The notes below the pieces were generated by a model. The model ran no database searches. It had not been told where the DNA came from and saw only the letters and a list, made by a program, of their open reading frames with translations. The translations under genes were made by a program, and so were the position numbers. This document shows positions 19,153-24,211 of a stretch of 64,000 bases of DNA, piece after piece. Location of the stretch: the NCBI GenBank assembly GCA_965603825.1, contig CBFDEM010000056.1, positions 806,001-870,000 of the forward strand, in the 5' to 3' direction. How positions within the stretch are numbered: the first letter of the stretch is position 1; every line of letters starts with the position of its first letter. This DNA is from Blepharisma stoltei ATCC 30299 (taxonomy: Eukaryota > Protista > Ciliophora).

Positions 19153-19301
19153 TAGCAAATTGTCAATTTTGAAATATAAGTGTTAAATTTTAACTTATAT
19201 AGTAATATCATTTTAAATCATATCGAAACAATGCTTACTATTATTTTATATTTATTTACAAAATATGATTGGCTTTCGATTATATTAAAAATATATTAAC
19301 T

Positions 19302-21857
19302 CTACCGCATTAAATCTTCTCCAAGTTCATTCTTAATGGTTTGAGCTTCTTCACGAGTAGGTCGATCAATTCCATTTTCTATAATTTTCAGTCTATACTT
19401 TCTTATCCCTGTCATTTTCGACACCTGCTTAATCGTTAAATTTTTCTTCATCCTAATTGCTCTTAAATATTGCCCTGTAATTTCTGCAAGTGGGTCTACA
19501 ACTGTAATAGTCTGAATAACTGTCTTTTTTCTCTGATCAGGAGAAAAATATTGAGTTCCAGACCTTTTCACCCCTCCAATTTCAAACTCATTAATTTTTG
19601 TCATTGTAGAACTTCTCAGCAAATTCATCGAGTCCCATTTATCATCAGCCAGAAAGTTCCTGGGAGTTTCAGCATTAGCAAATAAAGTCGCTGGATCGTC
19701 CATGCCAGTAGTCTGATCAGGGGCAACTGTTGCTTTTTTCGCTGTATATCGCCTTTTCTTTTGCCGAACCACCGGAGGCAAGTCTTTATTAATTTCCATT
19801 TTCCTCTTGCAACAGGCTTCTTGCAGCACAAAAAGTAAGCTTCCTGAGCACCTTGTGACCATAATAAATATTCCTACAATTGCAATATAGTAAAACAACG
19901 AAAACTCAAAGTCAAGCTCCAGCTTGTCAAATAAATTAAAAAAATAAGCAAGTGAAGCGTTACAAGTGACCCAGATAATTGACCATTTAGCTCGGAATTC
20001 TTCATATTCGTCAAGTCTGGCACGCTCTGAGACTTTTAACGGCTCTGTGTCTTTTTCCCATGAAATATCATGCATATTGCAAATCGCATAGGTAAGGAAA
20101 ATATTCACGTGGGTTGGGATCAAAAATATATAGTGAAAAATACCTTTACATACAGTACTTAAAGCGTTGTGAATAAAAAGGTCAAAAAAGAATAAAAAGA
20201 CTATGGCTGCGCAAGCAAGACCAAGCCAATAAATGCCAACAGCAAGTGTAATGAAATCATAAAGTATTATACCAATTGTGAAAAATATATAGCCTCCAAA
20301 GGCAGCTGATAAGATTTTATAGCCGTCTTCTAGTCTTCTGGGTTTAACTGAGAGCGCTAAGATTCAAACTATAATTACAAGGCCAACATATATAAGTATT
20401 ACCCAATTTCCAAATCCTGATTGGTCATAGTCATTTGTGTAGCTTGGGAACACTTTTCTTACGGTTAAAGCCATAGCTAAAAAATAAGACCCAACCAAAA
20501 ACCATGAAAATAGAACTGTGATCATATAATACCCCATCTGCAAAGTAAAGCACAGCTTGCGCAAGCAGTTATGATTTGTTTTAAAAATTTTAGTTGTATG
20601 TCTCAGCATGTCAATCAGCGAAAACCACGACCCATTTATTCATCTCCTGCGCTGTGCCATTAACGCAGCAAGTGATTTTGGAATTTCCACTCCTGCAGCT
20701 GCTTTCCAAACATATCTTAGCTTATAGCTGCTATTCTTTTTTGTTACTAAAGCGTGACAAAGTACTCTATCTTCTGCTAAATAAATATTTGCATGGAAAG
20801 CGTCCATCATTTCTGGGTGGCAAATTGATTTAAAATATTCTTTCCATAGAGGATCTCCTTGTAGCGCCTCTCATCTATATGCACAAAATGCACTTGGCAG
20901 CTTCGTGACAAACCCTGAAAGGCTTTCCAATGTTTTGCCAAAAATATGTTCAAATTTATACTCCACAGCCTGATACCCGCCAACTAAATTCCAGTTATTT
21001 TCTTCTACAGGCTTTATTTCTCCGCAGCATCCTGCTAGATCATTATCCACCTTCAGCGCCTCATATAGATAAAACAGCGATTTGGCTGCAGGCTTTGTCC
21101 CAGCATCCATCAAAAATACAATATTCGGGTTAAACATTTCACAGAACCCTCCAAAAAGCCACAAATGTGAGTTCAATTTTCTCCTTGTTTTCTGCTTTAC
21201 ACAGAAAATCATTTGAAGCCCTAAATCACAGTTATCAAAAAAGGCGTTCTGTATAAAACAATGAGCAAATTCATCTTCTTCGTTTTCACTAGGAATTTTG
21301 CACTCGTGGACATCAGAAACATTGAAAAAGGCTTTGATCCTTTCTTCGTCAAAAAACTGAGCGAAAAAAAATTTTTGCTTTAAATATGTTTCGATGAATG
21401 GTTTCATGCCATCTATAATAACAACGCAGCAGACCTGGTCAGGGGAAATCCCAGCCTTTCTGAACTCTTCTAGATGTCCTGAGATGCCTAGAACGGTGTT
21501 TTTGAAACTTTTTGCATCTTCATCTTGCATGGAAACTCCTATGAGGATTTCAACCTTTGAAGTCATGTTTTCGACGTAATCATATAAAAGTTCGGTAAAA
21601 ATACTCTGCCGAAAATCGCGGTCGGGAGGGATTCAGGTTAGACCTTCAACTTTGCTGAGGCCTCGGATTTGTTGGGTTCCGTAATAGTGATTGGTCATGT
21701 GTTTCATTAGTTTCATGGGCTGGTAAACCATTTCTTCGCTGACTCCTAAAGCTTTGTCTCCGCATTCGTCACCGTTCTCTTCAGTGACTAGCCCATAAGG
21801 GTCTCTAGGAAGTCGGACAACCTTTAATGATTTGATTGTTTTTCGTCTTTGCTGCAT
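19302..21857 (-). CDS. CHS: Chitin synthase (GT2) with C-terminal XRE-type HTH domain (851 aa, 4 TGA=Trp)
   Basis: Four ORF fragments share one frame, joined by TGA at 21633, 20871, 20640 and 20364. Motifs: KQKTRRKLNSHLW, MDAGT, AGCCGEI, QAVEY, LPSAFCAYRW, NIYLAEDRVLC, QRRRWING, TM helices, NMHDISW. TAG stop. Confidence 0.92.
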
Positions 21858-22169
21858 GACTAAAATATATTTATTATTAGCTACATAGCATCGCTAGCTT
21901 TTAAATTAAGTTAGTTTATTTATATTAATTTAAAGGATTAAGTTTTTTTAAGTAATAATAAGAGAATAAACAAAAAATTTTGAAAATTCTTTAAATTTGA
22001 TGGAACGCATAATTTAGAGGAAAATAGGGAGAAGAAAAAATCTTGAGATTGCTGGAATATAAAATAAGTTAGTGTTTTATCCAAGAATATGTTGAGATAA
22101 GATAATCTATGATAAATTTATAGTGTGATCTAGGCATAATATCAGTTTTGAGCATTTATTTTTCAAATA

Positions 22170-23078
22170 TTAATTATTTATCGCTGCATCTCTCAACAGC
22201 GCTAAAGGTCCTATTTTCTTTAAAAATTCCAACTCTTCATTACTTTTTACAAGCATAAATCCCATATAAGCCATAGCGTTTAAATCAAACCTGTTAAAGC
22301 TTCTTTCCTTCTCCCTTGGCACCAGAAGCATTCATTTCTCTGTAAGAATCAGATTATAAGAATGTGACGGATTCAGCAAATTCATCAATTTCTTATAAAT
22401 TCCATGCAAGTGCTCATATGTCGGATTTTTCGGAATCCCATGATAAAAATGCTTGAAATGGAAACAAGAAATTGCAAAAGGCCTCTCGCTTAAATTTTCC
22501 TCTATAACTTTGCCTAATGGAAAGTTTGGTAAGCTTGACCATGGTATAACCTGTATATGTTTGTGTTCTTGAGAATATCCTGAAGCCGGACCGGAGTTAT
22601 AAAACGCAAAAGCCCGGAGTTCTTTACATACTTCTCAGGCCACTCTGAAATCTTTTACTGTTAAAGGCTCTTCTTGCTTTTCAAACTGATAAGTAGCTAT
22701 CAGCACATGTTTGTCTACAACCGGAAACTTATTAAAAAGCAGCCTATAGCTTTGCCCAATATTTCTTATATGAATGCCTTCCTCAAAAGGATAGAGAAAG
22801 GGGTTAGTCTTTTGTGAGTTCCGAGCTGGTTTTTTGTGTTCTTCAAGTTTTACAGAGACTATAAAAGGGATATCTTGATCAATGACTTTTTCGTCCTTTA
22901 CTTTTAATTTCAGTACTGAGGGTGGGTTTAAAGAATAGATAACTTCTCTTAAGTTTTTCCTTGATCTTCTCCTAATTATTTTTCTTAAAGCCAAATAGCT
23001 TGCTGCAATAGCACTAATCGAAGCCAATGTTGCTAAAACATGATACTTTCACTTACGAAAATTAGCTAACAAGTCCAT
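22170..23078 (-). CDS. ATP adenylyltransferase / Ap4A phosphorylase (302 aa)
   Basis: Motifs NPFLYPFE, LFNKFPVVDKHVLI, FYNSGPASGYSQEHKHIQ, SYNLILTEK(W=TGA)MLLVPR and LNAMAYMG; TAA at 22170-22172. Confidence 0.88.
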
Positions 23079-23107
23079 TTTATTTAGAATGGATACTATC
23101 CATTTAC

Positions 23108-24211
23108 TTAATCCCATAGAGAATGAATATGAAGCTTGAAATCAGCAATAAGATTCGGGTGCCAATATTTCTTGTCTAAGCAAAGCTTAAAGTTCTCCAT
23201 TGTGCTCATGTCAGTGAGGGTGACCCAAGTTCTATCGTTCACGTTATCAAGTCCAGTCTGTGGGGTTGGTGGGAGAACTTGTAGATGGGTGACTTCATGA
23301 GCTACTTCTACTTCATGTGACCAAAAGGCTCCTGTTCTTTTAGTAATGAATAAAATATCTTTAGATGCATTGAACTGCATCTTTGACACAATATCATCAG
23401 TAGCTGCATGAAACAGATAAGTGTATCCCAGTGCCATAAGTGGGATAAGAGGGACCACAAATGCAGTCACAGCAATTGACCCAGTAGCTTGCCAAGGCGA
23501 GTCGAAAAGTACAGTCTGCTGCAAGAAGTTTTGGTTAATATTAGCATGGTCGCTTCTGATATCCATAAACTCATTTCCTACTGGATAAATAAATCTGCCA
23601 CTCCAAATACCATGCCACATATTAAAGCCTATATAAAAGAAGCTAGACCAGCCAATTTGCCTGACAAGAACTGCGCCTTGTCCAGCGTCTTTATTTTCAT
23701 ATAAAATATCCCCTTTTTCGAAATCCACATCTGGGTCTGGCTCTCTTGCAGGTTCTTGGACGAAGTGCGACTTGAAATTAGGGTTGTTTAGGTCAGTTTC
23801 GACTTGAAGCCATTTCAAAAGTTGGTCGTTGCCGGTCTCGATATGTTTTCTGTAGTTTCCAAGTCTTTCAGCTAAATGTGGGTATTTATCTTCAGTAGGA
23901 ACTGCTTGTCCATACCAGGGATAGGCTGGAAAACGGCCAGCTCTGCCGTACTTGTTGGGGAGGTTTCTGATTCTGATTTCTTCTGGTTTGCCAGCTTCTC
24001 TTAAGGCTTCTATTTTAGCAACATTTGAATCCAGCTCAGCTAATCTTTCGTCGAGAGTCTTCTGCCTTTCTTCTTGGGGTACTTTTGCCTCAGCTGGAGC
24101 TACCTTTTGGAGTACTTGAGCAATTTTTTTTTCTAATTCATCAGTAGCAGCACCTTGGCTGGTGGCTGCTGAGCTTGTGAAAGCTCTCCATAGTGTTCTA
24201 CGGGCCAACAT
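23108..24211 (-). CDS. Mitochondrion-targeted membrane protein (C-terminal region possibly TMEM70/186/223-like)
   Basis: 367-aa ORF; presequence-like MLARRTLWRAFTSSAA; two hydrophobic segments; no TGA codons. Confidence 0.7.
   Translation of the reverse strand: MLARRTLWRAFTSSAATSQGAATDELEKKIAQVLQKVAPAEAKVPQEERQKTLDERLAELDSNVAKIEALREAGKPEEIRIRNLPNKYGRAGRFPAYPWYGQAVPTEDKYPHLAERLGNYRKHIETGNDQLLKWLQVETDLNNPNFKSHFVQEPAREPDPDVDFEKGDILYENKDAGQGAVLVRQIGWSSFFYIGFNMWHGIWSGRFIYPVGNEFMDIRSDHANINQNFLQQTVLFDSPWQATGSIAVTAFVVPLIPLMALGYTYLFHAATDDIVSKMQFNASKDILFITKRTGAFWSHEVEVAHEVTHLQVLPPTPQTGLDNVNDRTWVTLTDMSTMENFKLCLDKKYWHPNLIADFKLHIHSLWD

Follow-up and report, generated by a model that had tools for sequence, protein, structure and literature searches.

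The window analysed here is a 64,000-nucleotide stretch of a Blepharisma stoltei contig, and on its minus strand lies a single-exon coding sequence (19302..21857) of 851 codons and a TAG stop, the product of which is referred to here as P0158. The only internal stops in this frame are four TGA codons (codons 75, 329, 406 and 498), and B. stoltei decodes TGA as tryptophan. Once TGA was counted as sense, the summed length of the frames of at least 300 codons in the window rose from 32.5 kb to 51.0 kb. The one-frame reading is further supported because the TGA codons fall at conserved tryptophan positions. Codon 75 (21633..21635, minus strand) aligns with a TGG-encoded tryptophan in the syntenic ortholog (locus L023), and codon 329 (20871..20873, minus strand) belongs to a YRW motif whose W329 is nearly invariant in the family. 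Similarly, codon 406 encodes W406 of the catalytic QRRRW motif (residues 402-406; 20640..20654, minus strand), and codon 498 (20364..20366, minus strand) lies within a transmembrane helix of the structural model. A preliminary description of this DNA had proposed a single 851-codon frame under TGA = Trp, and the codon scan and the TAG end bear this out. The same description had the standard code cutting the gene into four pieces, but the four TGA codons give five. Nor is the fusion hidden by gene calling, as had been claimed, since the public B. stoltei annotation, made with the right code, already holds the full 851-residue protein, and its database entry carries a precomputed PF12844 (HTH_19) match. 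Relatives in other assemblies have been split by standard-code gene callers. Heterotrich chitin synthase genes are all single-exon (PMC10946202).

A single study supplied the transcript-like data for the locus, namely contigs assembled from four runs that are presumed to be RNA. A 2571-nt transcript-like contig was colinear with the window over 19280-21845, with no joints or introns, and reached 22 nt past the stop rather than ending short of 19475, in support of one transcript carrying the fusion. Frame-keeping hidden introns of 15 nt, a size common in heterotrichs, were considered for this gene and are excluded by the colinear contigs. Depth was close to zero in both intergenic flanks in all four runs. 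It was likewise close to zero at 19163-19283, and the contigs from runs X1 and X4 stop at 19280; these contig ends place a short 3' untranslated end at 19280..19301 (minus strand). All 11 of the variants found within the coding sequence in run X4 were synonymous. The locus is thus almost certainly a genuine, transcribed, intron-less gene that encodes a division 1 chitin synthase of the Chs1/Chs2 type, a linker of ~105 residues and an independently folding XRE helix-turn-helix (HTH) domain.

Pfam searches were run on the standard-code pieces separately and on the isolated 70-residue tail. The second piece matched Chitin_synth_1 (81.4 bits, cut-off 25, 9.3e-23) and Chitin_synth_2 (40.3 bits, cut-off 27, 2.1e-10). 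The catalytic motifs DAGT (D..D), QxxEY (here QAVEY), LAEDR and QRRRW are all present in P0158; ScChs1, C. albicans Chs2 and Phytophthora sojae Chs1 resemble it in both Pfam families and in the DAGT, QxxEY, EDR and QRRRW motifs. The full-length AlphaFold model had a mean pLDDT of 83.6, exceeding 90 over most of the body including the GT-A region. This cytosolic GT-A glycosyltransferase region (residues ~40-430; 20568..21740, minus strand), delimited from Pfam, the model and Foldseek, contains DAGT, QAVEY and LAEDR. It is followed by a transmembrane domain (residues ~431-682; 19812..20567, minus strand), delimited from the model helices and homology to ScChs1. Solved division-1 synthases have the same order of a GT-A domain and a helical membrane domain (TM-score ~0.6-0.75). 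Foldseek retrieved ScChs1, PsChs1 and CaChs2 (8k3w, 7wjo, 7stn) for the body at E ~1e-35 to 1e-34; ScChs1 was the best structural match of the full-length model, and BcsA was also among the structural relatives. The body is a chitin synthase and may make chitin from UDP-GlcNAc. It differs from the solved division-1 synthases in the XRE HTH that a long linker adds to its end, in its short N-terminal region and in having WEKD in place of WG(T/N)(K/R).

The last of these differences may bear on catalysis. The deviant motif ISWEKDTEP (residues 598-606; 20040..20066, minus strand) occupies the place of (C/V)(T/S)WGNRPD in relatives, which is equivalent to yeast WGTKG. In SWEKD the tryptophan is retained, but glycine is replaced by glutamate and arginine by aspartate, so that the (S/T)WG(T/N)(K/R) pattern is lost; WGNRPD was found in more than 90% of the 48 relatives aligned. 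The L023 ortholog shares the identical deviant motif, and the alteration is limited to this one ortholog pair. Chitin synthases are dimers regulated via a cytosolic swapping loop that starts at the WG motif, and the ScChs1 variant G970A does not rescue (PMC10409773). The enzyme activity of P0158 is therefore uncertain, its WG motif being deviant and G970A being non-functional in ScChs1.

The transmembrane domain is followed by the linker (residues 683-788; 19494..19811, minus strand), which has a basic juxtamembrane start with a CC pair and for which residues 702-787 had pLDDT values below 50 in the full-length model. Across the family, linkers range from 60 to 538 residues and their sequences are unalignable. 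Within the P0158 linker, a short linear motif, ETPRNF..DDKWD.MNLL (residues 730-747; 19617..19670, minus strand), proved on sequence comparison to be shared with the ortholog only.

The protein ends in an XRE/Cro-C1-type HTH (residues 789-850; 19308..19493, minus strand), identified by Pfam, AlphaFold and Foldseek. The preliminary description had quoted a 52-residue stretch of this domain at 19305-19475; that stretch occupies 19323-19478, and 19305-19475 corresponds to residues 795-851. The 353-residue last piece scored 30.7 bits for HTH_19 (cut-off 30.2) and 25.9 bits for HTH_3 (cut-off 23), and the isolated 70-residue tail scored 35.1, 30.3 and 27.1 bits for HTH_19, HTH_3 and HTH_25, respectively. 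The core of the tail had pLDDT values of 94-97 when modelled alone and of 88-97 in the full-length model, where its helices span residues 795-804, 809-816, 820-827 and 835-850. The assignment of the tail as an XRE HTH is therefore supported both by the above-cut-off HTH_19 and HTH_3 matches and by the predicted structure. In Foldseek the tail superposed on SinR, DdrO, C.Kpn2I and P22 c2 at an rmsd of ~0.9-1.0 A over 51-52 residues (probability 1.00), and a profile of 27 tails searched against the PDB matched CapH at 1.9e-6 and DdrOC at 6e-6. SinR, DdrO, CapH, C-proteins and P22 c2 are thus the best sequence and structure matches of the tail. These prokaryotic and phage XRE repressors are small soluble DNA-binders, whereas the HTH of P0158 ends an 851-residue eukaryotic membrane enzyme.

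Two residues are invariant among the tails, R802 and E827, presumably corresponding to the buried R10-E35 salt bridge of the 434 repressor. The net charge was +1 to +9 in 26 of the 27 tails (+8 in P0158), which we counted in favour of a docking or regulatory role, and helix 3 has a conserved basic pair. At the helix-3 positions by which 434-type domains select bases, the tails differ from one another, some paralogs having acidic residues there. The charge and the basic pair of helix 3 are indirect indications that the tail may bind DNA.

The tail had also been called RodZ-like, and this holds at the level of the superfamily. RodZ likewise has an XRE-fold HTH tethered to the cytoplasmic face of a membrane and is linked to wall synthesis, and the tail profile matched T. 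maritima RodZ (2wus_R) at 1.2e-4. The likeness does not extend further: HTH_25 scored below HTH_19 and HTH_3, and DdrO and CapH were closer. RodZ consists of HTH_25 at the N-terminus, one transmembrane helix and DUF4115, whereas in P0158 a multi-helix synthase precedes the HTH, which is C-terminal; no DUF4115 match was found in the P0158 pieces, and the NCBIfam rodZ model gave 13.8 bits (cut-off 375). MreB, the partner of RodZ, is missing from eukaryotes. The resemblance to RodZ is one of design, not a sign of descent.

MBF1/EDF1 also shares the HTH_3 fold with the tail, and Foldseek listed the EDF1/Mbf1 ribosome complexes 7o81, 6zvh and 9f9s at ranks 33-48. The Pfam search of the P0158 pieces found no MBF1 N-terminal domain, and the aMBF1 model reached 16.3 bits (cut-off 110). 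An origin of the tail from the cell's own MBF1 was considered and rejected, as the tail profile scored 2.1 bits against both B. stoltei MBF1 proteins (genes at C55:420.9k and C37:510k of genome G000) and ~30 bits against bacterial XRE; against solved MBF it scored 19.5 bits. The ESM Atlas neighbours of the tail were bacterial HTH_3 and viral clusters (including Nucleocytoviricota), all with scores below 0.9, and are leads rather than a basis for naming a donor.

The fusion does not stand alone. Five B. stoltei paralogs have the same terminal HTH, which is also present in Stentor coeruleus (SteCoe_24170, SteCoe 6072 and 10593) and in about 20 metagenomic heterotrich-like proteins from independent assemblies. 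Among 74 full-length homologues, 21 carry a terminal HTH, always at the C-terminus. The fusion thus defines a conserved subfamily, the known members of which all come from heterotrich ciliates, namely Blepharisma, Stentor and metagenomic relatives. Between P0158 and the syntenic ortholog, identity was 77% in the HTH, 52% in the linker (21-33% against paralogs) and 49% in TM5-6, so that nothing else in the C-terminal third, the flanking transmembrane helices included, is as well conserved as the HTH. The HTH is under purifying selection and is always at the extreme C-terminus in the subfamily. Nearly all HTH-bearing members have intact catalytic motifs; one paralog, P0006 (locus L011), keeps the HTH while its catalytic motifs have eroded. 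HTH-less sister paralogs carry other conserved C-terminal motifs instead, and this suggests that the tails can stand in for one another as address or regulatory modules.

Two further readings of the history of the tail were set aside. Grouping all HTH-bearing synthases into one clade was rejected in an AU test on a 52-row subset (LG+G4; lnL difference 180.6, p ~3e-76), the group having been named after the tree was seen. Equally, HTH remnants at the tail-less loci L005/L006 and L010/L012, proposed from a likeness to a truncated helix 1 seen by eye, were not upheld by a six-frame profile scan, in which all matches had E >1. The tail region of P0177 alone, searched against a large protein collection, returned four close relatives only.

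Accessory domains are well known from other chitin synthases and include the myosin-motor, cytochrome-b5 and DEK-C domains of fungal classes V/VII, the oomycete MIT domain and the mollusc myosin-CHS fusions. They direct transport or placement of the enzyme. These synthases resemble P0158 in having a non-catalytic cytosolic domain attached; their domains differ from its tail by sitting at the N-terminus or by having a quite different fold, and no XRE HTH is among them. No description of an XRE HTH on a chitin synthase was found in full-text literature searches, in agreement with the earlier statement that no such fusion was known. The text of a 2024 survey of 86 ciliate chitin synthases, for which CD-Search was run, makes no reference to an HTH (PMC10946202). 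With chitin synthases being placed or regulated by accessory domains, the XRE HTH of this heterotrich subfamily represents a new kind of accessory domain. The fusion also bears on how protists position wall and cyst synthesis, a field that is little understood.

ScChs1 has six transmembrane helices, two of which follow the WG loop, forms a dimer and has both its N- and C-termini in the cytosol (PMC10409773). By homology, the tail should be cytosolic, with two tethered HTHs per synthase dimer. We favour, with a probability of roughly 0.4, the reading that the HTH is a docking or regulatory module tethered near the membrane and not a nuclear transcription factor. The HTH would bind an anionic partner belonging to the cell cortex or to the secretory pathway, and this binding would dock the synthase, or expose it to regulation, at or near the membrane. 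Docking would in turn set the place and time of chitin deposition for the cyst wall or lorica. This role is favoured because accessory domains such as the myosin motor and MIT do likewise in other chitin synthases. Since nearly all HTH-bearing members have intact catalytic motifs, the tail normally serves an active enzyme, and the variable length and sequence of the linker leave no family-wide cleavage site apparent. If true, docking would be a rare non-DNA role of the XRE fold. The large majority of XRE domains bind DNA, and the tail keeps both the generic features of the fold and a basic helix 3, which makes nucleic-acid binding a strong prior against docking. Paired HTHs on a dimer are also the geometry of classical repressors, a point that was entered against docking. 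In the small clade of the window gene, its ortholog and P0006, the tail may matter independently of catalysis, because P0006 is eroded yet HTH-bearing and the window gene and its ortholog deviate at the WG motif; here a sensor or regulator fits as well as docking does.

A membrane-tethered transcription regulator is possible but rather unlikely. Proteolysis in the linker or the last helix would free the HTH, possibly as a dimer, to enter the macronucleus and regulate genes, triggered by encystment, substrate level or wall stress, with the synthase body active or eroded. The nearest folds to the tail, those of SinR-DNA, P22 c2-operator and DdrO, are of DNA-bound repressors, the tail is strongly basic, and the retention of the HTH in eroded P0006 would suit such a role. 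An NLS-like basic stretch directly after the last helix points the same way, although the positive-inside rule alone predicts a basic juxtamembrane stretch. Against proteolytic release stands the lack of a conserved cleavage site among unalignable linkers of 60 to 538 residues, while the variable and sometimes acidic base-specificity positions of helix 3 and the apparent activity of most members as enzymes also argue against it. XRE domains are, to our knowledge, nearly absent from eukaryotes apart from MBF1, and we know of no XRE protein other than this co-activator that regulates transcription in the nucleus of a eukaryote.

It is improbable, to a greater degree, that the HTH acts within the synthase itself, either folding back as a gate onto its own or the partner protomer's GT domain or swapping loop, or pairing with other HTHs to build synthase arrays. 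A PilZ domain gates bacterial cellulose synthase, and BcsA, a structural relative of the body, bears a C-terminal regulatory domain. The loop through which chitin synthase dimers are regulated (PMC10409773) starts at WG, and it is exactly this motif that is altered in the window protein and its ortholog. This alteration is nevertheless confined to one ortholog pair, whereas the HTH is family-wide, and linkers of up to 538 residues would be odd for an in-cis plug.

Two other possibilities have a small chance each. In the first, the tail would bind RNA or ribosomes, as the HTH of MBF1/EDF1 does on the 40S, and keep ribosomes or mRNAs close to where the wall is made. The match to ribosome-bound EDF1/Mbf1 and the basic surface of the tail are consistent with this, and RNA is the most accessible nucleic acid for a cytosolic tethered domain; the bit scores given above, far lower for the cell's own MBF1 and lower for solved MBF than for bacterial XRE, and the missing MBF1 N-terminal domain speak against it. 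In the second, a synthase body that has lost some or all of its catalysis in the small clade of the window gene would serve at a membrane as a sensor of UDP-GlcNAc, nascent chitin or wall stress and control an XRE DNA-binder, in the manner of one-component signalling. Taken together with the further step that the XRE domain, released or operating from the nuclear envelope, would switch encystment or wall genes, this is given the same small chance. If true, it would be the first nuclear eukaryotic XRE transcription factor besides MBF1. Were docking not its role, the tail would be a eukaryotic nucleic-acid binder tethered to a membrane. The tail is open to tagging, deletion and pull-down, and RNAi is established in Stentor.

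That the fusion is an artefact or neutral relic (through the mis-joining of a neighbour gene, faulty assembly, or the capture of a fragment that is now decaying and functionless) is very improbable, for although the Pfam scores are barely above the cut-offs, the architecture recurs in five paralogs, the syntenic ortholog, Stentor and ~20 metagenomic proteins, the gene is covered by a single transcript-like contig and the HTH is conserved above the flanking transmembrane helices. The tail is weakly detected by Pfam, a precomputed HTH match being listed for 1 of 18 HTH-bearing full-length proteins, and standard-code assemblies detach it from the synthase, so that it stands there as a small 'HTH protein' of its own. 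One protein of the family carries a tandem HTH pair.

Read with TGA as sense, the minus strand at window 19302-21857 forms one frame of 851 codons followed by TAG. The only in-frame stops are TGA (n = 4; codons 75, 329, 406 and 498), codon 406 supplying the W of catalytic QRRRW and codon 329 one that is nearly invariant across the family. Blepharisma stoltei is a ciliate in which TGA encodes Trp, and frames of at least 300 codons, summed over the window, rose from 32.5 kb to 51.0 kb when TGA was taken as sense. The preliminary description, of a chitin synthase with a helix-turn-helix (HTH) at its C-terminus, was thus right about the single frame under TGA=Trp, of which the four TGA are the sole internal stops, and about its terminal HTH, but not about the four pieces expected under the standard code, of which there are five. 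Nor is the fusion hidden, as had been claimed: the complete 851-residue product is present in the protein collection (P0158), and B. stoltei paralogs are deposited in public protein records. Database entries of tail-bearing proteins carry automatic names, and a precomputed HTH family is found on P0158 only. We found no report of an HTH on a chitin synthase in the literature. A 2024 survey of 86 ciliate chitin synthases (CHS), including those of B. stoltei and Stentor, assigned domains by CD-Search and does not mention one in its text or available supplement, the figure aside (PMC10946202). The anatomy of the fusion is solid and new to the literature, the sequences themselves being already public.

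The gene stretch was present in four runs of one study (X1-X4), in gene-shaped contigs. Single contigs of 2571 nt (X1) and 2546 nt (X2) spanned 19280-21845 and 19309-21854, respectively, free of joints, insertions or deletions over the gene. In each of the four runs, depth fell to about zero across the intergenic stretch on either side (19163-19283 and 21946-22066). That the runs are RNA is our guess; this pattern is the one expected of a transcriptome assembly, and the empty spacers in the same data serve as a silent control. On this presumption the proposal of one transcript holds, the transcript-like contigs being colinear through the HTH, with a contig end 22 nt past the stop codon downstream of it. 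All 11 coding-sequence differences in run X4 were synonymous. Heterotrich CHS genes all have one exon, according to the survey (PMC10946202). A 1243-nt transcript-like contig at 20622-21035 (runs X2 and X4, record 6) matches in two short conserved stretches only, separated by a diverged segment of equal length; it comes from a transcribed, diverged paralog rather than from alternative splicing.

Pfam searches with pieces of the gene matched both Chitin_synth_1 (E 9.3e-23) and Chitin_synth_2 (E 2.1e-10), and placed the last piece above cut-off for HTH_19 (30.7 bits; cut-off 30.2) and HTH_3 (25.9 bits; cut-off 23), with HTH_25 at 23.5 bits, in agreement with the domains first proposed. The 70-residue tail alone scored 35.1, 30.3 and 27.1 bits, respectively. 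NCBIfam matches were all weak (archaeal regulator, RstR, MqsA, aMBF1 and RodZ). AlphaFold, given an alignment of 27 tails, modelled the tail with a core pLDDT of 94-97, and this predicted fold superposes on the XRE repressors SinR, DdrO, C.Kpn2I and P22 c2 at about 0.9-1.0 Å over 51-52 residues. The full-length P0158 model (mean pLDDT 83.6) was confident for the body (residues 40-700) and the HTH (789-850), with pLDDT <50 at residues 702-787; among solved structures, its body matches the chitin synthases ScChs1, PsChs1 and CaChs2 (E about 1e-35).

The fusion extends to a family. In the B. stoltei genome (41.46 Mb, 64 contigs; the window is C56:806001-870000), searches that took HTH_3, the tail and the C-terminal piece as queries brought out no fewer than 14 paralogous chitin synthases, and five of these end in an HTH: the window gene (19302-21857, minus strand, P0158) and those at C36:491.4k (L003, P0157), C36:783.8k (L011, P0006), C20:336.7k (L004) and C56:72.9k (L008, P0167). 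The other above-cut-off HTH_3 matches were two MBF1 genes only. Synthases also occur in tandem, three at C20:336.7-342.8k (HTH in one only) and two at C62:22.6-26.2k. We searched 1.84 billion representatives exhaustively without a profile; together with a word-indexed search this gave 74 full-length homologues, of which 21 have the tail, invariably at the very end. The architecture, sought in other heterotrichs as earlier suggested, was found in Stentor coeruleus (SteCoe_24170, 6072 and 10593; SteCoe_5130 and 10702 have no tail) and in metagenome proteins, the remaining bearers lying on gene-dense eukaryotic contigs. Among the more distant homologues that lack the tail are proteins of Climacostomum and Perkinsus and further paralogs from Stentor and Blepharisma.

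A tree was computed from the bodies of 81 synthases, each stripped of any HTH, and is unrooted as regards the order of gain and loss; every tail fell within one 47-row clade that includes Blepharisma and Stentor sequences. Its Blepharisma group has the tail in 5 of 14 rows, and the Stentor-like group divides in two, tail-bearing (17 rows) and tail-less (16 rows), each with support 100; the pattern requires a minimum of three state changes. Monophyly of the HTH-bearing rows was rejected (p-AU about 3e-76, on a 52-row subset under a simple model, with the group chosen post hoc from the tree). The distribution would fit either a single early acquisition with later losses or tail exchange between paralogs. 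The best PDB matches of the tail profile were the bacterial CapH (1.9e-6) and DdrOC (6e-6), ahead of RodZ (1.2e-4) and an MBF (6.6e-3). Because these two matched best and the B. stoltei MBF1 itself scored 2.1 bits, a copy of MBF1 was rejected as the source, and the domain is of prokaryotic or viral XRE type. ESM Atlas neighbours gave leads only, naming no donor.

A syntenic ortholog of the window gene lies on L023, a contig of another TGA=Trp assembly, where it is called as separate pieces, the HTH being a 205-residue 'protein'. Upstream neighbours (window 22170-24211, minus strand; L023:207-2246) are apparently syntenic and so speak for orthology. The case for synteny is a 367-residue ORF of equal length; the other neighbour, an Ap4A-phosphorylase-like gene, was read from L023. 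Identity to this ortholog was 77% in the HTH, 52% in the linker and 49% in TM5-6, and to paralogs 54-57%, 21-33% and 33-39%, respectively. Linkers range from 60 to 538 residues across the family; a short linear motif, ETPRNF..DDKWD.MNLL (window 19617-19670, minus strand), is shared by the window gene and its ortholog and absent from paralogs, the rest being unconserved. The same sample (Logan SRR24908292), from a TGA=Trp heterotrich-like organism, contains a chitin synthase ending in two tandem XRE HTHs, with catalytic motifs intact (L022:2108-4825, plus strand).

More than 90% of 48 relatives carry the consensus (C/V)(T/S)WGNRPD, at the position of yeast WGTKG, the swapping-loop start. P0158 has ISWEKDTEP instead (residues 598-606; window 20040-20066, minus strand), its remaining catalytic motifs being intact; the identical form in the L023 ortholog marks the change as maintained rather than as decay. 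The ScChs1 mutation G970A, in WGTKG, gave no rescue (PMC10409773), and the change in P0158 falls on this G, which is essential in ScChs1. The sister paralog P0006 (C36:781501-785127) has YSYESEV for YLAEDRV, QRRCW and LLEAGT, has lost WG, and is on these motifs likely a pseudo-enzyme; its 832-codon frame is intact, and its end branch (1.2) is the longest of its clade. As P0006 keeps its HTH (56% identity) despite eroded motifs, the tail may have a value beyond catalysis in this small clade.

ScChs1 functions as a dimer and has six transmembrane helices, cytosolic N- and C-termini, and a cytosolic swapping loop beginning at WGTKG (PMC10409773). Two helices follow this loop, and by homology the C-terminus of P0158 would likewise be returned to the cytosol; a basic stretch after residue 682 agrees. 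A synthase dimer would then bear two HTHs, each on a tether of about 100 residues. Two positions are invariant among the tails, R802 and E827, which we take to be the counterparts of R10 and E35, the buried salt bridge of the 434 repressor; they are fold determinants. Helix 3 retains a basic pair, (R/K)-L-(R/K), and 26 of the 27 tails carry a net charge of +1 to +9.

For the role of the tail we tentatively prefer docking or regulation by a tethered module of the synthase (probability about 0.4), because the sequences of nearly all members are those expected of active enzymes, the linker shows no conserved cleavage site across the family, the sister clade that lacks the tail has a conserved C-terminal motif of its own, and the accessory domains known on chitin synthases serve in placement. 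A membrane-tethered transcription factor freed by cleavage is unlikely: the helix-3 positions that read bases in 434-type domains are variable across tails and acidic in two paralogs, and comparison of family linkers by sequence and length found no conserved cleavage site. Somewhat less probable is an in-cis or oligomerisation regulator. We give slightly less credence again to an RNA or ribosome binder. An artefact or relic is very improbable, the HTH being the most conserved of the three regions compared. The short acidic motif at the C-terminus of the Stentor-like proteins without HTH (P0169, P0172, P0174, P0160 and P0161), approximately (F/L)-D-x-I-x-x-K-I-D-x-E, may serve them as another kind of address or regulatory signal. 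On two metagenomic contigs (L013:16630-18736 and L016:12869-18607) an HTH-bearing synthase lies 1.6-5.9 kb from a NUP210-like nucleoporin gene, one to four genes intervening, which is probably nothing more than synteny between related organisms.
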